A stretch of 62,851 bases of DNA, filler included, from Basidiobolus meristosporus CBS 931.73 (GCA_002104905.1; 4 parts of 4 records of this genome joined end to end with filler, not necessarily neighbours in it); one strand, 5' to 3'. Positions 35,184 through 45,547 are shown, counted from the whole stretch's first letter. Numbers and translations: made by a program. Notes: a model not told the origin generated them from the letters alone.

Positions 35184-35389
35184 TCAATTTAACTTACCCG
35201 CCATTTAGATCAAAATCTATTGCTCGCCGTTGGTGGCTTAGTCAGGTAAGTGCAATTATAGGAGCTCTCCACGTACCTGCTGTCTCATTATAGACTTTTT
35301 TTGTAACGCAGTTGATTAACAAGCTAGTAACGGTGCTATTGTACAATTTATCTCCATATTATATTTTAAATCAGGATCAAATAACAAAA

Positions 35390-35474
35390 CCGAACATAGC
35401 TCAGTTGGTAGAGCGGAAGACTGTAGTGTTATATAGCAATCTTTAGGTCCCTGGTTCAAATCCGGGTGTTCGGA
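35390..35474 (+). tRNA. trnY: tRNA-Tyr(GTA) with a 12-nt intron (35427-35438)
   Basis: Cloverleaf CCGAACA/TGTTCGG; intron at 37/38; T-run terminator. Confidence 0.96.
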
Positions 35475-35764
35475 ATTTTTGGTTTGTGCAAACCCTATTC
35501 CTACGGGTATCACTTGTGGGTAGAGCCTTGCAGCAAAGGCTCGCCTTTTTCTTGTTGGATGTGGCTCTTTACATACGATATTTGCAATACTTTATGTTAT
35601 TGCTTTACCACCGTATCTGCAATGGTTTTAAGAAATATTGGCCCTTCCCATAGTGCATTGCCCTAAGTATACAATTTTTGCTTTGTTGCCCCTGAACGAT
35701 TGCTTCCTTTTTGATACTTGTTGGTGGGAATACCGGTTGCCAGGGAAAACAAAATATAAAAATG

Positions 35765-35838
35765 CGCTCCTGGGTGGGCTTGAACCACCAACCTCCTGAT
35801 TAACAGTCAGACGCGCTAGCCAATTGCGCCACAAGAGC
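35765..35838 (-). tRNA. trnN: tRNA-Asn(GTT)
   Basis: GCTCTTG/CAGGAGC acceptor; CT GTT AA loop; A and B boxes. Confidence 0.97.
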
Positions 35839-36149
35839 TTCAACTGACAAACGTTGGTTTCTCAAAATACTTGTATCAGTGTTCATCTTGGTTGATAGAA
35901 GCATTTGCATAAAACTAGCTTAGCAAGGATTCTCTGGATGGTGCACCTGCCTCCCAAAGTCAGCCATATCAGTATGTTCTATGCCGGGTGGATTCCCTAA
36001 CCCGACGGTTTCCATAATTCTTTGAAGCATCACGGAAATCATCTTTTAAGCGTTTGATAACCACTGTAGAATGGCAAACTCCGACCATATAGGAAACCAA
36101 CACTTGACAAAAACGACATATTCCATTAAAACTTTGTACACTCAATAAG

Positions 36150-36222
36150 GCCCGGCTAGCTCAATCGGTAGAGCGTGAGACTCTTAATCTCAAGGTTGTG
36201 GGTTCGACCCCCACGTTGGGTG
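36150..36222 (+). tRNA. trnK: tRNA-Lys(CTT)
   Basis: GCCCGGC/GTTGGGT acceptor; CT CTT AA loop. Confidence 0.96.
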
Positions 36223-36364
36223 ATGTATATTTTTTATTCTTTGTTTTTCACTTTCCTGGAATTGAGCAATAATTTTTGTGTTTTGAACGGTTGTCTGTAT
36301 ATGATATTTAAGCCGGATAGTGATATGGAAGAATGAAACAATGAATCCCAATAGAGTAATTATT

Positions 36365-36436
36365 GGACGTATAGCTCAGTGGTAGAGCAATTGACTGCAG
36401 ATCAATAGGTCGGTGGTTCAAATCCGCCTGCGTCCT
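36365..36436 (+). tRNA. trnC: tRNA-Cys(GCA)
   Basis: GGACGTA/TGCGTCC acceptor; CT GCA GA loop; U73. Confidence 0.97.
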
Positions 36437-36556
36437 CATCTTTTTTGCTAATTGAAGCGTTCATTAAAATACAATTTCGCCTAGCCACCAATTACATCTA
36501 CTCACATAAATATAGCATTCAAAAGATTGATGAAATTCATTTAGAATAATCCAAAA

Positions 36557-36629
36557 TGGAGGACCTGGGTATCGATCCCAGTGCCTCTCGCATGCTAAGC
36601 GAGCGCTCTACCATCTGAGCTAGACCCCC
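36557..36629 (-). tRNA. trnA: tRNA-Ala(AGC)
   Basis: G3-U70 pair; TT AGC AT loop. Confidence 0.97.
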
Positions 36630-37019
36630 ATATATATACACCTCGGTGGAAAACCACTTATCTTTTTTAATTCTTCAATAGATGTACTCGCATGGCAAAG
36701 AAAATACTGGCTAGCATTGAATTGAGGACCCTGTTAACAATGGTAATGTGTATGTCTCTTATTATCAACTTTGTGCGATCAAGGGGGCATTCATTGATGT
36801 ATGACTGATGGCTATTTTGGAGCATTTTTGTTATCCACACTACAGATGCTTTTGTTTCTTTCGGTTTGTTAATAGAAATCTCTCTGTGGCTACGCTATTA
36901 AGAGCTTCTGCCGTTTTCCCATATATAGCGCAATCTAGAAGTACACTAAATGTGAAAAGTAATCAAGCCTAACAGATCAGATTTCCGTATTTTCTAAGAC
37001 GGTTGTTTGCACTGGTACT

Positions 37020-37091
37020 GGCTCAATGGTTTAGTGGTATAATTCTCCCTTAGGGTGGGAGAGGTCCTGGGTTCAATTCCCAGTTGAGCCC
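37020..37091 (+). tRNA. trnP: tRNA-Pro(AGG)
   Basis: GGCTCAA/TTGAGCC acceptor; TT AGG GT loop. Confidence 0.97.
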
Positions 37092-37355
37092 TTCTTTTGT
37101 TTGTTTTCCTGTCAAAATGGATTGTTAGTAAGAATGGGGTACTCTGAGCTGCAGCAGCAATTAATGTTGTGGATTCCCCTTGGTAATTCTTGATTGACAA
37201 GTAATGTAAAAATGCAATTTTTCCATCACAACAGAGCCCTCTATTTAGTTACTTGGGGCAACTGACTACCTTTGGTTGTAATACGCACAAAGCCCGATTT
37301 AGTATCTACGCTAGGCATACTTGATCCAAATAATTTAGAGGGTCAGGAAAAGTAA

Positions 37356-37429
37356 TGTCTTCGCTCGGATTCGAACCGAGGACCGTCTGTGTGTTAGACA
37401 GACGTGATAACCAACTACACCACGAAGAC
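37356..37429 (-). tRNA. trnV: tRNA-Val(AAC)
   Basis: GTCTTCG/CGAAGAC acceptor; CT AAC AC loop. Confidence 0.97.
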
Positions 37430-37736
37430 ATATGTTTATTGGAAAGGATAGTAATGTACTTGATTGTGTTTATACATAAGGTCAATGTATAGCAAGTTTT
37501 GTGTACCGCGTGTCAAGTGCACTGGCCAAGGAATATGCCAAATTTAAGTACATCGCAACCACGGTTTCCAGCATAATTACAAATGTTTATTTTAGGTATG
37601 GAAAAAGTCTATTGGGGTCTGCTATGGGATTGGATAGTATATCTACCTGTTGTCCAAGAAATGAATAGCGTATGATAGTTACATTATGATTTTAGAAAAT
37701 CAAATGTCCAACGATCATACCATATATTATAAGTGT

Positions 37737-37808
37737 GGGGGGTTGGCGCAACGGTAGCGCGTTCGCCTCCAGAGCGAAAGGTTGCGTGTTCAAATCACGC
37801 ACTCCTCA
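37737..37808 (+). tRNA. trnW: tRNA-Trp(CCA)
   Basis: GGGGGGT/ACTCCTC acceptor; CT CCA GA loop. Confidence 0.96.
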
Positions 37809-38048
37809 CTTAATTTTTGCCACTTTTTAGCACATGTTGTAATGATGGTTAACTCAACCTCAGTCGCAGAGCAAGGTATTGTTTATTGATACATATCTCT
37901 TTGCTGTGTGTTCCTTTGTCCTATTTGATAACGTGTATGTCTACACTATCCATGTGCGGGTTTATTTTAAGCAAAGTTATTGATAACTAATTTATATTGC
38001 TAGCTCAGCTCTGATTACATACATGGCTATATCAGAGCTACAAGCTAA

Positions 38049-38122
38049 GCTCGCATAGCTCAGTTGGTTAGAGCGTGGTGCTAATAACGCCAAGGCCGCA
38101 GGTTTGACCCCTGCTGTGAGCA
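38049..38122 (+). tRNA. trnI: tRNA-Ile(AAT), T-loop variant TTTGA
   Basis: GCTCGCA/TGTGAGC acceptor; CT AAT AA loop. Confidence 0.93.
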
Positions 38123-38445
38123 TTCTCTTTTAGCCTTAGCGTAGTGTTACATCATGGCTATCCACTTTAGACTTGCGTTTATCTTTTCACGCTTTGCTGA
38201 TATTATCAAGCATTTCACATACCTACTGTACACTCCAATGCCTCTGTATCATCTCTATATTACACCGCTATCAGATGCTCCGGTATATTAGAATGGTACT
38301 GACTATCCTAGCATAAGAAATTAAGCCACTCAGAGCTTCAGGGGAATTGGGATCTCTATCCGGTGTGATGAAAATGATGTTTCTGTCTTTATGAGTAGTG
38401 CCCAAACCAAAGGGATTGCACCTGGTAGATGGCACTATCCTGGGT

Positions 38446-38517
38446 TCTCGGATAGTATAGTGGTAAGTATCCCTGCCTGTCACGCAGGAGACCCGGGTTC
38501 AATTCCCGGTCCGAGAG
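38446..38517 (+). tRNA. trnD: tRNA-Asp(GTC)
   Basis: TCTCGGA/TCCGAGA acceptor; CT GTC AC loop; G73. Confidence 0.97.
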
Positions 38518-38780
38518 TTTCTTTTGAGCTTTGAAGTAATATTTTGTATGAAAAACCTTGGTGCATGACAGAAACGAAAATCTAACCTCGATTGTGATGC
38601 TAAGTGGCCCCATAGATATTAGTCAAGATACTTTCATTTGTTAATAGAAAGCTCTGACTATATCATTAAGAGTATGTATCGAAATGCTTAGGGTGTGGTA
38701 TACGAACCCTTTGGATTTGCTAGACAATGATATACAAGGATATGTCAACTGTGAATATTTCATAGACTCAACTGTGCTCC

Positions 38781-38852
38781 TCCGCATTGGTCCAGTGGTC
38801 AGGATCTCTCGCTCTCACCGAGAAGGCCGGGGTTCGATTCCCCGATGCGGAA
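38781..38852 (+). tRNA. trnE: tRNA-Glu(CTC)
   Basis: TCCGCAT/ATGCGGA acceptor; CT CTC AC loop. Confidence 0.97.
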
Positions 38853-39225
38853 GTTCAATAATACCTTTTAATCCAAAGGTACAACTTCATGGCCCGTTTC
38901 GTTGAAGCAATGCAATCCAGCTGTTTATATATTTTTGCCGGAATGGTGAATTCCTCGTTAAGAACCTTCGAGTGGCGTGCAACCTGTATACTGAAGTGTT
39001 GTTAGCCGGGTGGTCTCTTTGTATCACACAATACCCTAATTGTGCATATTAGGAAAACAAATACCCGGTTGTATTTATACATAGTATAACACCTATACGA
39101 GATAAAAATGTATAGACACGGTTATCTATATGAATGAGCATAGTTAATGGCTAATACGAACTACTGATATACGGAAAGCTTCGCTCTCAAGCTAAGAGTT
39201 ACTTTGAGAATACAGTAGACAATAT

Positions 39226-39298
39226 GGGCGTATGGCCAAATGGATAAGGCGCCTGACTACGGATCAGGAGATTCCAGGTTCGATCCCTGGTATGCTCG
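39226..39298 (+). tRNA. trnR: tRNA-Arg(ACG)
   Basis: GGGCGTA/TATGCTC acceptor; CT ACG GA loop. Confidence 0.97.
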
Positions 39299-39977
39299 TA
39301 TTTTTGCTCTTTTAGAGTTGTATTTCCAAACCTCAAGAATATCGCACATTTGGTGAGATATCTTTACTTTAATTACTCTTACGGGTTCCTTCTTCCGCTT
39401 CAACATTAGGGAGCATACATAATACTACATTTATGGTGAAAACCAATAGTAAACTTTACTAGGCCCAGCTTGCCAGAAAAATGACGTACCCTTGATAAGC
39501 TTGGCTGGTCAAGGCTTTAGAGTTCCCATTTAGGTTATAAAGCAAAAGGTTCGATGTACGTAGGAGAGGTTAGGGCCAGCGAACAAATTAAACAAAATTA
39601 ATTTGGTTGTGTTCAATGATGCATACAGCATTTTTACAAAATTTCGTCATAACCGCCTAAGTTTACCATTACTAGACTAGTGCTAACATCTAAACTCCCT
39701 TCCCCCGAATGGAACTTGTTTCAGTGGTGTCAGTAGTCACCCGCCTAGCCAGCTGCGACCAAAGGGACTTGCATATTACTTCAATACTTTGATCTATTTC
39801 GGTTGGTATGCATATATATTCCAGTCATTAGATGATATATATTAATGGCACTGGTATGGACCACCCGGAGAAAGGTGGGCTTAAACCACCATAGCCTTGC
39901 AACCTCCCATGCTTGTTTGAAGTGGCAAAAGCATAACATAATTAAAGATAAATACTCATTGAGATACGTTACTCTCG

Positions 39978-40096
39978 AGCATCGGCCATACATACCAGAA
40001 AATACCGGATCCCGTCCGATCTCCGAAGTCAAACTGGTAATGGCCTAGTCAGTACTACGGTGGGGGACCACGTGGGAATACTAGGTGCTGATGTTT
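39978..40096 (+). rRNA. 5S: 5S rRNA
   Basis: GGCCATAC start; GGATCCCGTCCGATCTCCG; AGTACT...GGGGGACC...GGGAA; terminal helix AGCATCGGC/GCTGATGTT; T4 terminator. Confidence 0.97.
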
Positions 40097-40289
40097 TCTT
40101 CCGAATTGCTCCACTACACAATACTCTTTTGCTTCTGTTATGTGTGCGTGTGTCTGTTCTTCCTTTGCTACTGCTGTCTTTGGTATAAAAGAGTTTGCTT
40201 TCCAGATACAATGCTGCTCTCTATTCCCTAGTCATTATTGCTGAAGGGCAATTTTAGATAGTATATATAAGAAAGGGTTGTCGTATAAT

Positions 40290-40362
40290 GCCTCCTTGGC
40301 TCAGTTGGCAGAGCGTCTGCCTAGTAAGCAGAAGGTCGCTGGTTCGATTCCGGCAGAAGGCA
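40290..40362 (+). tRNA. trnT: tRNA-Thr(AGT)
   Basis: GCCTCCT/AGAAGGC acceptor (one C-A mismatch); CT AGT AA loop; TATATATAA about 28 nt upstream. Confidence 0.95.
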
Positions 40363-40555
40363 TGTTTTACATGTTGAACCTTTTATACTTTTATACTTGT
40401 ACAAGAAAATGTCTTTATTGTCTACTTCAAAGGGCTGTGCTAAGCATCCAAATGTTCAAAACATTAAGTGGCCGTTGCCCATGTCATTTACTAAATCTGG
40501 CTTTGGCTCTTATGTGACTCTTGAGTAAAAGCAAGCAAAATTACTCCAAAAGCAA

Positions 40556-40638
40556 TGAAGAGAGTGGGATTCGAACCCACGCCTCCGAAGAGATCACGGC
40601 CTTAACGTGACGCCTTAGACCAACTCGGCCATCTCTCC
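40556..40638 (-). tRNA. trnL: tRNA-Leu(AAG)
   Basis: GGAGAGA/TCTCTTC acceptor; TT AAG GC loop; long variable arm. Confidence 0.97.
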
Positions 40639-40877
40639 ATTCTTGTGGTTTGTTTACCATCGTTCTAAATGTCAATTTAACTTACCCGCCATTTAGATCA
40701 AAATCTATTGCTCGCCGTTGGTGGCTTAGTCAGGTAAGTGCAATTATAGGAGCTCTCCACGTACCTGCTGTCTCATTATAGACTTTTTTTGTAACGCAGT
40801 TGATTAACAAGCTAGTAACGGTGCTATTGTACAATTTATCTCCATATTATATTTTAAATCAGGATCAAATAACAAAA

Positions 40878-40962
40878 CCGAACATAGCTCAGTTGGTAGA
40901 GCGGAAGACTGTAGTGTTATATAGCAATCTTTAGGTCCCTGGTTCAAATCCGGGTGTTCGGA
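40878..40962 (+). tRNA. trnY: tRNA-Tyr(GTA) with intron, unit 2
   Basis: Same as the unit 1 copy; intron 40915-40926. Confidence 0.96.
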
Positions 40963-41252
40963 ATTTTTGGTTTGTGCAAACCCTATTCCTACGGGTATCA
41001 CTTGTGGGTAGAGCCTTGCAGCAAAGGCTCGCCTTTTTCTTGTTGGATGTGGCTCTTTACATACGATATTTGCAATACTTTATGTTATTGCTTTACCACC
41101 GTATCTGCAATGGTTTTAAGAAATATTGGCCCTTCCCATAGTGCATTGCCCTAAGTATACAATTTTTGCTTTGTTGCCCCTGAACGATTGCTTCCTTTTT
41201 GATACTTGTTGGTGGGAATACCGGTTGCCAGGGAAAACAAAATATAAAAATG

Positions 41253-41326
41253 CGCTCCTGGGTGGGCTTGAACCACCAACCTCCTGATTAACAGTCAGAC
41301 GCGCTAGCCAATTGCGCCACAAGAGC
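41253..41326 (-). tRNA. trnN: tRNA-Asn(GTT), unit 2
   Basis: Same as the unit 1 copy. Confidence 0.97.
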
Positions 41327-41637
41327 TTCAACTGACAAACGTTGGTTTCTCAAAATACTTGTATCAGTGTTCATCTTGGTTGATAGAAGCATTTGCATAA
41401 AACTAGCTTAGCAAGGATTCTCTGGATGGTGCACCTGCCTCCCAAAGTCAGCCATATCAGTATGTTCTATGCCGGGTGGATTCCCTAACCCGACGGTTTC
41501 CATAATTCTTTGAAGCATCACGGAAATCATCTTTTAAGCGTTTGATAACCACTGTAGAATGGCAAACTCCGACCATATAGGAAACCAACACTTGACAAAA
41601 ACGACATATTCCATTAAAACTTTGTACACTCAATAAG

Positions 41638-41710
41638 GCCCGGCTAGCTCAATCGGTAGAGCGTGAGACTCTTAATCTCAAGGTTGTGGGTTCGACCCCC
41701 ACGTTGGGTG
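41638..41710 (+). tRNA. trnK: tRNA-Lys(CTT), unit 2
   Basis: Same as the unit 1 copy. Confidence 0.96.
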
Positions 41711-41852
41711 ATGTATATTTTTTATTCTTTGTTTTTCACTTTCCTGGAATTGAGCAATAATTTTTGTGTTTTGAACGGTTGTCTGTATATGATATTTAAG
41801 CCGGATAGTGATATGGAAGAATGAAACAATGAATCCCAATAGAGTAATTATT

Positions 41853-41924
41853 GGACGTATAGCTCAGTGGTAGAGCAATTGACTGCAGATCAATAGGTCG
41901 GTGGTTCAAATCCGCCTGCGTCCT
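41853..41924 (+). tRNA. trnC: tRNA-Cys(GCA), unit 2
   Basis: Same as the unit 1 copy. Confidence 0.97.
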
Positions 41925-42044
41925 CATCTTTTTTGCTAATTGAAGCGTTCATTAAAATACAATTTCGCCTAGCCACCAATTACATCTACTCACATAAATA
42001 TAGCATTCAAAAGATTGATGAAATTCATTTAGAATAATCCAAAA

Positions 42045-42117
42045 TGGAGGACCTGGGTATCGATCCCAGTGCCTCTCGCATGCTAAGCGAGCGCTCTACC
42101 ATCTGAGCTAGACCCCC
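42045..42117 (-). tRNA. trnA: tRNA-Ala(AGC), unit 2
   Basis: Same as the unit 1 copy. Confidence 0.97.
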
Positions 42118-42507
42118 ATATATATACACCTCGGTGGAAAACCACTTATCTTTTTTAATTCTTCAATAGATGTACTCGCATGGCAAAGAAAATACTGGCT
42201 AGCATTGAATTGAGGACCCTGTTAACAATGGTAATGTGTATGTCTCTTATTATCAACTTTGTGCGATCAAGGGGGCATTCATTGATGTATGACTGATGGC
42301 TATTTTGGAGCATTTTTGTTATCCACACTACAGATGCTTTTGTTTCTTTCGGTTTGTTAATAGAAATCTCTCTGTGGCTACGCTATTAAGAGCTTCTGCC
42401 GTTTTCCCATATATAGCGCAATCTAGAAGTACACTAAATGTGAAAAGTAATCAAGCCTAACAGATCAGATTTCCGTATTTTCTAAGACGGTTGTTTGCAC
42501 TGGTACT

Positions 42508-42579
42508 GGCTCAATGGTTTAGTGGTATAATTCTCCCTTAGGGTGGGAGAGGTCCTGGGTTCAATTCCCAGTTGAGCCC
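42508..42579 (+). tRNA. trnP: tRNA-Pro(AGG), unit 2
   Basis: Same as the unit 1 copy. Confidence 0.97.
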
Positions 42580-42843
42580 TTCTTTTGTTTGTTTTCCTGT
42601 CAAAATGGATTGTTAGTAAGAATGGGGTACTCTGAGCTGCAGCAGCAATTAATGTTGTGGATTCCCCTTGGTAATTCTTGATTGACAAGTAATGTAAAAA
42701 TGCAATTTTTCCATCACAACAGAGCCCTCTATTTAGTTACTTGGGGCAACTGACTACCTTTGGTTGTAATACGCACAAAGCCCGATTTAGTATCTACGCT
42801 AGGCATACTTGATCCAAATAATTTAGAGGGTCAGGAAAAGTAA

Positions 42844-42917
42844 TGTCTTCGCTCGGATTCGAACCGAGGACCGTCTGTGTGTTAGACAGACGTGATAACC
42901 AACTACACCACGAAGAC
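42844..42917 (-). tRNA. trnV: tRNA-Val(AAC), unit 2
   Basis: Same as the unit 1 copy. Confidence 0.97.
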
Positions 42918-43224
42918 ATATGTTTATTGGAAAGGATAGTAATGTACTTGATTGTGTTTATACATAAGGTCAATGTATAGCAAGTTTTGTGTACCGCGTG
43001 TCAAGTGCACTGGCCAAGGAATATGCCAAATTTAAGTACATCGCAACCACGGTTTCCAGCATAATTACAAATGTTTATTTTAGGTATGGAAAAAGTCTAT
43101 TGGGGTCTGCTATGGGATTGGATAGTATATCTACCTGTTGTCCAAGAAATGAATAGCGTATGATAGTTACATTATGATTTTAGAAAATCAAATGTCCAAC
43201 GATCATACCATATATTATAAGTGT

Positions 43225-43296
43225 GGGGGGTTGGCGCAACGGTAGCGCGTTCGCCTCCAGAGCGAAAGGTTGCGTGTTCAAATCACGCACTCCTCA
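43225..43296 (+). tRNA. trnW: tRNA-Trp(CCA), unit 2
   Basis: Same as the unit 1 copy. Confidence 0.96.
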
Positions 43297-43536
43297 CTTA
43301 ATTTTTGCCACTTTTTAGCACATGTTGTAATGATGGTTAACTCAACCTCAGTCGCAGAGCAAGGTATTGTTTATTGATACATATCTCTTTGCTGTGTGTT
43401 CCTTTGTCCTATTTGATAACGTGTATGTCTACACTATCCATGTGCGGGTTTATTTTAAGCAAAGTTATTGATAACTAATTTATATTGCTAGCTCAGCTCT
43501 GATTACATACATGGCTATATCAGAGCTACAAGCTAA

Positions 43537-43610
43537 GCTCGCATAGCTCAGTTGGTTAGAGCGTGGTGCTAATAACGCCAAGGCCGCAGGTTTGACCCCT
43601 GCTGTGAGCA
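43537..43610 (+). tRNA. trnI: tRNA-Ile(AAT), unit 2
   Basis: Same as the unit 1 copy, including the TTTGA T-loop. Confidence 0.93.
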
Positions 43611-43933
43611 TTCTCTTTTAGCCTTAGCGTAGTGTTACATCATGGCTATCCACTTTAGACTTGCGTTTATCTTTTCACGCTTTGCTGATATTATCAAGCA
43701 TTTCACATACCTACTGTACACTCCAATGCCTCTGTATCATCTCTATATTACACCGCTATCAGATGCTCCGGTATATTAGAATGGTACTGACTATCCTAGC
43801 ATAAGAAATTAAGCCACTCAGAGCTTCAGGGGAATTGGGATCTCTATCCGGTGTGATGAAAATGATGTTTCTGTCTTTATGAGTAGTGCCCAAATCAAAG
43901 GGATTGCACCTGGTAGATGGCACTATCCTGGGT

Positions 43934-44005
43934 TCTCGGATAGTATAGTGGTAAGTATCCCTGCCTGTCACGCAGGAGACCCGGGTTCAATTCCCGGTCC
44001 GAGAG
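43934..44005 (+). tRNA. trnD: tRNA-Asp(GTC), unit 2
   Basis: Same as the unit 1 copy. Confidence 0.97.
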
Positions 44006-44268
44006 TTTCTTTTGAGCTTTGAAGTAATATTTTGTATGAAAAACCTTGGTGCATGACAGAAACGAAAATCTAACCTCGATTGTGATGCTAAGTGGCCCCA
44101 TAGATATTAGTCAAGATACTTTCATTTGTTAATAGAAAGCTCTGACTATATCATTAAGAGTATGTATCGAAATGCTTAGGGTGTGGTATACGAACCCTTT
44201 GGATTTGCTAGACAATGATATACAAGGATATGTCAACTGTGAATATTTCATAGACTCAACTGTGCTCC

Positions 44269-44340
44269 TCCGCATTGGTCCAGTGGTCAGGATCTCTCGC
44301 TCTCACCGAGAAGGCCGGGGTTCGATTCCCCGATGCGGAA
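44269..44340 (+). tRNA. trnE: tRNA-Glu(CTC), unit 2
   Basis: Same as the unit 1 copy. Confidence 0.97.
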
Positions 44341-44713
44341 GTTCAATAATACCTTTTAATCCAAAGGTACAACTTCATGGCCCGTTTCGTTGAAGCAATG
44401 CAATCCAGCTGTTTATATATTTTTGCCGGAATGGTGAATTCCTCGTTAAGAACCTTCGAGTGGCGTGCAACCTGTATACTGAAGTGTTGTTAGCCGGGTG
44501 GTCTCTTTGTATCACACAATACCCTAATTGTGCATATTAGGAAAACAAATACCCGGTTGTATTTATACATAGTATAACACCTATACGAGATAAAAATGTA
44601 TAGACACGGTTATCTATATGAATGAGCATAGTTAATGGCTAATACGAACTACTGATATACGGAAAGCTTCGCTCTCAAGCTAAGAGTTACTTTGAGAATA
44701 CAGTAGACAATAT

Positions 44714-44786
44714 GGGCGTATGGCCAAATGGATAAGGCGCCTGACTACGGATCAGGAGATTCCAGGTTCGATCCCTGGTATGCTCG
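44714..44786 (+). tRNA. trnR: tRNA-Arg(ACG), unit 2
   Basis: Same as the unit 1 copy. Confidence 0.97.
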
Positions 44787-45465
44787 TATTTTTGCTCTTT
44801 TAGAGTTGTATTTCCAAACCTCAAGAATATCGCACATTTGGTGAGATATCTTTACTTTAATTACTCTTACGGGTTCCTTCTTCCGCTTCAACATTAGGGA
44901 GCATACATAATACTACATTTATGGTGAAAACCAATAGTAAACTTTACTAGGCCCAGCTTGCCAGAAAAATGACGTACCCTTGATAAGCTTGGCTGGTCAA
45001 GGCTTTAGAGTTCCCATTTAGGTTATAAAGCAAAAGGTTCGATGTACGTAGGAGAGGTTAGGGCCAGCGAACAAATTAAACAAAATTAATTTGGTTGTGT
45101 TCAATGATGCATACAGCATTTTTACAAAATTTCGTCATAACCGCCTAAGTTTACCATTACTAGACTAGTGCTAACATCTAAACTCCCTTCCCCCGAATGG
45201 AACTTGTTTCAGTGGTGTCAGTAGTCACCCGCCTAGCCAGCTGCGACCAAAGGGACTTGCATATTACTTCAATACTTTGATCTATTTCGGTTGGTATGCA
45301 TATATATTCCAGTCATTAGATGATATATATTAATGGCACTGGTATGGACCACCCGGAGAAAGGTGGGCTTAAACCACCATAGCCTTGCAACCTCCCATGC
45401 TTGTTTGAAGTGGCAAAAGCATAACATAATTAAAGATAAATACTCATTGAGATACGTTACTCTCG

Positions 45466-45547
45466 AGCATCGGCCATACATACCAGAAAATACCGGATCC
45501 CGTCCGATCTCCGAAGTCAAACTGGTAATGGCCTAGTCAGTACTACG
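45466..45547 (+). rRNA. 5S: 5S rRNA, unit 2 (cut by the contig end)
   Basis: Identical to the first 82 nt of 39978-40096. Confidence 0.95.

Follow-up and report, generated by a model that had tools for sequence, protein, structure and literature searches.

What does a 5.5-kb sequence represent when it carries 14 different transfer RNA (tRNA) genes together with a 5S ribosomal RNA (rRNA) gene and is repeated head to tail from one end of a contig to the other? The contig that raises this question occupies positions 35184 to 45547 of the analysed window, a stretch of 62,851 nucleotides with filler included, and all positions given here without a contig name are those of the window. Our analysis of its repeat structure, gene content and occurrence in sequencing runs favours the interpretation that it derives from a head-to-tail array on a chromosome of a eukaryotic nuclear genome, probably that of a fungus, in which each unit would contain 15 genes that are transcribed separately by RNA polymerase III (Pol III). 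On sequence evidence we regard this interpretation as likely, although well short of established.

The repeat itself is unusually regular. Self-comparison of the contig, which comprises 10,364 bases with 0 N and a G+C content of 40.8%, revealed direct repetition at an interval of exactly 5488, in agreement with the first-pass annotation, which had described a head-to-tail array with this period. Shifting the sequence against itself by 5488 leaves 1 mismatch and 0 indels over the 4876 overlapping positions (4875/4876 identical, spacers included), and 1.89 copies of the unit lie head to tail between 35184 and 45547, which is the repetition of a multi-kilobase unit that characterises the tRNA/5S arrays of the fission yeast Schizosaccharomyces japonicus. 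The sole difference between the copies (38407/43895) is a C/T substitution and not a homopolymer indel, and at least two variants of the unit therefore exist. The tandem junction that had been placed at 40671/40672 reflects merely the phase imposed by the start of the contig; what stands is that the spacer between the tRNA-Leu and tRNA-Tyr genes runs continuous and unbroken across this point and links successive units. The contig begins and ends within unit sequence, with no unique flank on either side, the appearance expected of a collapsed repeat.

The gene content of the unit was recovered concordantly by two methods. ARAGORN finds 26 tRNA genes in the contig and Rfam an identical set of 26 (53-72 bits against a threshold of 29), with a full-length 5S rRNA gene reported by Rfam in addition (threshold 38; Table 1). 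Each unit reads Tyr (with an intron), Asn, Lys, Cys, Ala, Pro, Val, Trp, Ile, Asp, Glu, Arg, 5S, Thr and Leu, with ten tRNA genes and the 5S gene on the plus strand and Asn, Ala, Val and Leu on the minus strand; the 14 different tRNAs and one 5S per unit, in this order and on these strands, had been called in the same way from the sequence beforehand. The genes account for 1160 of the 5488 bases of the unit and are separated by spacers of 121-679 nt.

Individually, these genes have the features expected of functional type 1 and type 2 Pol III genes, namely a canonical fold, A and B boxes and a terminator of their own, with exceptions confined to position 56 of tRNA-Ile and a mismatch in tRNA-Thr. 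An A box lies at +8 in every tRNA gene of the unit, and a B box at +51-53 in those of standard length; in Tyr and Leu, which are longer, the B box is found at +62 to +64. The acceptor stem is paired at 7/7 positions in 13 of the 14 tRNA genes, and CCA is not encoded by any of them. A run of T4-T6 begins 1-13 nt downstream of all 15 genes, that of the 5S gene overlapping its 3' end, where the background probability of such a run at a random position of the unit is 0.11, so that 15/15 is far above chance. This result bears out the earlier suggestion that each gene has its own T-run, and because all 15 genes do, neighbouring genes are best described as separate Pol III units rather than parts of a polycistron. 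Upstream of the genes (-45 to -11), runs of A/T are weakly enriched (P ~0.03), and given the weakness of this enrichment we do not claim TATA-like upstream elements of the kind known from Pol III genes of fission yeast.

The composition of the tRNA set is as distinctive as its arrangement. The 14 tRNA genes serve 14 different amino acids, an outcome with P ~0.002 under equal random draws from 20. Seven of the eight tRNAs with A34 (inosine) are present, those for Ala, Pro, Val, Ile, Arg, Thr and Leu, with Ser missing, and the set is completed by G34 tRNAs for four two-codon boxes, along with C34 forms for Lys, Glu and Trp. The unit thus provides one main decoder per amino acid, and no tRNA gene within it serves Gly, Ser, Phe, His, Gln or Met. 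Such a composition could be explained by selection for a cassette that is balanced.

Between the genes, the unit appears to contain little else. The longest open reading frame (ORF) in the contig encodes 83 aa, the longer ORFs mostly overlap RNA genes, no protein gene was found, and exact look-up of ten ORF products in a collection of 15 billion proteins gave no match. A permissive Rfam search over the contig returned, beyond the 15 genes, a single match, to snoZ107_R87 at 21.4 bits against a threshold of 50, which lies mostly in the spacer before Pro; the remaining sub-threshold matches fall on tRNA genes. Nor did Rfam show any 18S, 5.8S or 28S rRNA in the contig, which sets the unit apart from 35S ribosomal DNA (rDNA), while the combination of many different tRNA genes with 5S in a unit that has no protein gene is that of the S. 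japonicus arrays. A z-score folding scan of 274 windows of 120 nt on both strands gave a best spacer-only value of z = -2.36, which is not beyond expectation. Within the unit we found no internal duplication, the repeat families consisting mostly of shared tRNA boxes and a few chance-level short spacer matches, and Tandem Repeats Finder reported three trivial two-copy rows and no microsatellite-like repeats in the spacers. The spacers have a G+C content of 37% and a CpG observed/expected ratio of 0.60, compared with 0.85 in the genes, together with a TpG/CpA excess of 1.17, a depletion compatible with cytosine methylation of the repeat. A signature of repeat-induced point mutation (RIP) was absent from the unit, with negative RIP indices.

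Whether the array extends beyond what the contig displays was addressed by word searches against Logan per-run contigs, in which organisms are letter-coded and the relatives are B-F. Four runs of the probable source sample contain 19/19 sampled words of the joint between Leu and Tyr (queried as 40640-40877), and four runs of that sample include 81-85% of the words of the unit. These runs are probably the data behind the contig and hence not independent of it; the presence of the joint in per-run Logan contigs nevertheless excludes an error of the submitter's assembler alone. The source-sample runs comprise only ~1-2 million letters of Logan contigs each, and if their reads are error-prone long reads, we infer that only high-copy DNA would assemble at such small totals. 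Because both contig ends lie inside the unit with no unique flank, and because these small-total runs contain the joint and most words of the unit, the array probably extends beyond the contig in more than two copies. In the five other coded organisms (B-F), 0.09-0.11 of the unit words occur per run. Words wholly inside genes make up, by arithmetic, ~0.13 of all unit words, so that for organisms B-F most gene sequences are exactly the same as here, whereas the spacers are not shared. The spacers of the array were found only in the source sample, and the three runs of organism B (2013), which carry the same species label, lack every one of the 19 joint words. Fast evolution of the spacers, a strain-specific array or a coarse species label could each account for their absence from same-label runs.

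Further context comes from the 5S gene. Scanning metagenomes for a 22-nt 5S motif yielded 18 loci (L001-L018), none of which contains tRNA genes or matches the spacers of the unit. In 11 of the 18 loci the 5S gene shares a contig with 18S or 28S rRNA, and in the contigs that reach both of these genes (L007, L009 and L017) it lies between them. The 5S gene of L014 (L014:974-1100) is 118/119 identical to that of the unit and is situated ~900 nt past the 3' terminus of a eukaryotic large-subunit (LSU) rRNA gene (L014:1998-2608), on the opposite strand, while the similarity between L014 and the unit ends a few bases outside the 5S gene. This position fits an rDNA spacer, and L014 would accordingly represent a close relative in which 5S is linked to rDNA. 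Since the tRNA-Tyr gene has an intron at 37/38, CCA is not encoded and a near-identical 5S gene stands beside a eukaryotic LSU rRNA gene, the genes of the unit clearly read as eukaryotic and nuclear. The same rDNA-linked 5S gene in a relative, together with the ~60 Mb of contigs in related runs, suggests that the unit probably belongs to a lineage other than the fission yeasts. A further scenario, which we put forward tentatively as possible rather than probable, is that of an extensive chromosomal array, specific to the strain, in fungi of a lineage other than the fission yeasts, in which 5S was moved or copied from an rDNA spacer into a tRNA cassette.

The metagenome loci also have features of their own. 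In L014, a ~36-nt subrepeat occurs twice beside the LSU gene (L014:1-60 and L014:229-270), its first copy running into telomere-like CCCTAA units. Thirteen of the 18 loci carry an identical or near-identical 120-nt 5S gene that matches the unit 5S at 89/120 positions, in 6 of them on a contig with 18S or 28S rRNA; several of the contigs are similarly named, and the 13 loci probably derive from one abundant environmental eukaryote.

Several observations weigh against the interpretation of an extended and active array. The contig displays just 1.89 copies and has no unique flanking sequence that would place the array on a chromosome, and the organism B runs contain 0/19 joint words and 0.11 of the unit. 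An rDNA-like co-amplification, as proposed in the first-pass annotation, would call for a high copy number. At the level of the genes, 8 of the 15 terminators are only T4, the tRNA-Ile(AAT) gene has T in place of the near-invariant C56 of the T-loop and B box in both copies, which may be either a lineage trait or a sign of a weakened gene, and the C-A mismatch of tRNA-Thr(AGT), at the fifth acceptor-stem pair, affects the sole Thr copy of the contig. Furthermore, the Arabidopsis Ser/Tyr tandem cluster SYY illustrates that tandem tRNA clusters can be silenced, as it reportedly is in most tissues (PMC12308677), and to that extent amplification is no proof of output; this bears on the first-pass idea, plausible in itself, that one copy number might scale the supply of tRNAs and 5S. 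The Arabidopsis case lends weight to a different view of the locus, in which the multi-copy array is real yet mainly structural or silent, a pericentromeric or heterochromatic block built of Pol III genes that would act as centromere-associated or boundary chromatin, in the manner of fission yeasts, and would not be the main source of these RNAs. The depletion of CpG in the spacers with its accompanying TpG/CpA excess is what would be expected of a methylated repeat, and would fit this view as well. However, none of the 15 genes is damaged and each retains its promoter boxes and terminator, where decay would be expected of silent copies unless they are homogenised, and the way in which main decoders are represented without redundancy looks selected; a mainly silent array strikes us as unlikely, though more probable than the alternatives that follow.

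The other alternatives question the array itself. A local duplication of two or three units without amplification would account for the 1.89 copies, and the near-identity of the copies could mean that it was very recent, but a long-read assembler would have extended a two-copy duplication into its flanks instead of ending inside the unit, and the recovery of every sampled joint word in four runs with ~1 Mb of contigs suggests, by inference, a high depth, which together render a low-copy duplication quite improbable. Small circles are often assembled at about twice their unit length, and one or more extrachromosomal circles of 5.5 kb, possibly excised from an array and assembled as nearly two turns, would explain both a contig of 1.89 units without unique flank and the detection of the spacers in only one sample of the species. 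Such a molecule would be in effect a tRNA/5S plasmid, an autonomous or excised circle carrying Pol III genes only, through which the dosage of 14 tRNAs and 5S could be changed quickly, an idea that we hold to be far-fetched. The unit encodes no replication or partition gene, and indeed no ORF above 83 aa, the C/T difference between the copies implies at least two unit variants, and the known precedents of tRNA/5S repeats are chromosomal, so that a circular origin also appears very improbable. Finally, the restriction of spacer words to runs of the source sample and their absence from same-label runs might point to an assembly artefact or to the contig of a contaminating organism. An artefact is difficult to reconcile with the joint being present in per-run Logan contigs of at least 4 runs and with the fact that missed-adapter errors yield inverted, not direct, repeats, whereas a contaminant is countered by the exact sharing of most gene words with organisms B-F, according to which the contig fits the same clade. 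We consider this last explanation barely credible.

If the contig is indeed a piece of a chromosomal array, TFIIIC and TFIIIB, with TFIIIA for the 5S gene, would load Pol III on each gene separately, and the array would continue past the contig in more than two copies that unequal exchange and gene conversion would keep uniform, as in rDNA. Such an array could provide the main decoders and 5S RNA in a constant 1:1 proportion, and it may have an additional or even main role in forming chromatin of pericentromeric or boundary type, as it is known from fission yeasts. Were the array large and active, gene dosage would be tied at 1:1 across the 14 tRNAs and 5S and changeable as a block. This architecture would bear on the matching of tRNA supply to codon use and ribosome production, and on the question why centromeric or boundary chromatin is so often built from Pol III genes.

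Table 1. Repeat copies, RNA genes and notable spacers of the contig, in window coordinates.
Feature	Position	Strand	Details
Repeat unit, copy 1	35184..40671		5488 bp, complete; phase set by contig start
tRNA-Tyr(GTA)	35390..35474	+	Rfam 59.9 bits; 12-nt intron after position 37
tRNA-Asn(GTT)	35765..35838	-	Rfam 65.7 bits
tRNA-Lys(CTT)	36150..36222	+	Rfam 64 bits
tRNA-Cys(GCA)	36365..36436	+	Rfam 71.9 bits
tRNA-Ala(AGC)	36558..36629	-	Rfam 53.4 bits
tRNA-Pro(AGG)	37020..37091	+	Rfam 57.4 bits
tRNA-Val(AAC)	37356..37429	-	Rfam 64.7 bits
tRNA-Trp(CCA)	37737..37808	+	Rfam 65.1 bits
tRNA-Ile(AAT)	38049..38122	+	Rfam 63.2 bits; T-loop TTTGACC
Sole inter-copy difference	38407 (C) vs 43895 (T)		Spacer upstream of Asp
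tRNA-Asp(GTC)	38446..38517	+	Rfam 64.1 bits
tRNA-Glu(CTC)	38781..38852	+	Rfam 62.8 bits
tRNA-Arg(ACG)	39226..39298	+	Rfam 60.8 bits
Longest spacer, Arg to 5S	39299..39977		679 nt; no RNA family, ORF or structured window
5S rRNA	39978..40096	+	Rfam 108.6 bits, model positions 1-120; TTTT run overlaps 3' end
tRNA-Thr(AGT)	40290..40362	+	Rfam 65.1 bits; C-A mismatch in acceptor stem
tRNA-Leu(AAG)	40556..40638	-	Rfam 56.1 bits
Leu-to-Tyr spacer, joining successive units	40639..40877		Spans 40671/40672; continuous
Repeat unit, copy 2	40672..45547		First 4876 bp; ends inside 5S at contig end
Twelve tRNA genes of copy 2, Tyr to Arg	40878..44787	As in copy 1	Same order; ARAGORN, Rfam
Copy 2 of 5S rRNA	45466..45547	+	Rfam 60.6 bits; ends at model position 83 (contig end)

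The closest known counterpart of the unit is found in S. japonicus, whose telomere-to-telomere assembly EI 1.0 describes tandem tRNA/5S rRNA arrays (bioRxiv 10.1101/2023.09.04.556195; PMC7619369) and thereby supplies the described fungal example of which the first-pass annotation knew none. That genome has 34 copies of a 5.6-kb unit at the centromere of chromosome 2, and a 6.4-kb unit is repeated 46 times in a centromere-like region, each unit being composed of 9 tRNA genes, three 5S genes and a further 9 tRNA genes (18 tRNA genes in total), and it contains additional tRNA-only arrays, with 3885 tRNA genes overall (PMC7619369). As in the present contig, a fungal head-to-tail unit of several kilobases combines many different tRNAs with 5S and has no protein genes. 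The two nevertheless differ in composition, since our unit has 14 tRNA genes and one 5S gene, serves no amino acid twice and lacks Phe, Gly, Gln, Met, Ser and His, and none of the gene orders given in that paper matches it in sequence of genes or in content, so that they are not the same unit. The S. japonicus copies have been counted and their centromeric location is known, in contrast to the 1.89 copies and absent flanks of our contig. The S. japonicus arrays collapse in ordinary assemblies (PMC7619369), and with arrays of this kind the tRNA gene counts for the present genome are probably underestimates.

Centromeric mixed clusters of tRNA and 5S genes also occur in S. pombe, S. octosporus, S. 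cryophilus and S. osmophilus, with at most 12 different tRNA genes and unconserved spacers, but these are inverted or dispersed repeats, unlike the regular head-to-tail single unit described here. Outside the fungi, Xenopus laevis has a 3.18-kb repeat with 8 tRNA genes. Tandem tRNA arrays are known as well from Phytophthora infestans, which has thousands of tRNA genes in arrays with one to three genes per unit (PMC9584435), from the 27-unit Ser/Tyr array SYY of Arabidopsis (PMC2886086) and from human 1q23.3, where the repeat measures 7.3 kb (PMC4041453). All four, like the present array, consist of independent Pol III tRNA genes amplified head to tail, and the arrays of Phytophthora, Arabidopsis and human are thought to have expanded through unequal crossing-over (PMC9584435, PMC2886086, PMC4041453). 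Their units contain one to eight tRNA genes with no mention of 5S, however, and none covers 14 amino acids. In the amoebozoan Entamoeba nearly all tRNA genes lie in tandem arrays, some units of which also include 5S (PMC2652664). The Entamoeba units have at most 5 tRNA genes with microsatellite-like short tandem repeats between them, whereas the present unit has 14 tRNA genes and unique spacers and is therefore not of the Entamoeba type.

A final parallel is offered by 35S rDNA with 5S in the intergenic spacer, the arrangement of L014, which likewise amplifies 5S together with other translation RNAs in a uniform tandem repeat; here, in contrast, 5S is tied to tRNAs and not to 35S rRNA. Of the fungal papers that our literature searches retrieved, only those on S. 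japonicus described a natural tandem tRNA/5S array, and none gave an account of the present unit. The unit is a real feature and a further case of a known type of array, probably the second independent one in fungi. If the array proves to be large and active, a second fungal lineage would have brought main tRNAs, without redundancy, and 5S together in a uniform repeat of independent origin, as a counterpart to the arrays of S. japonicus.

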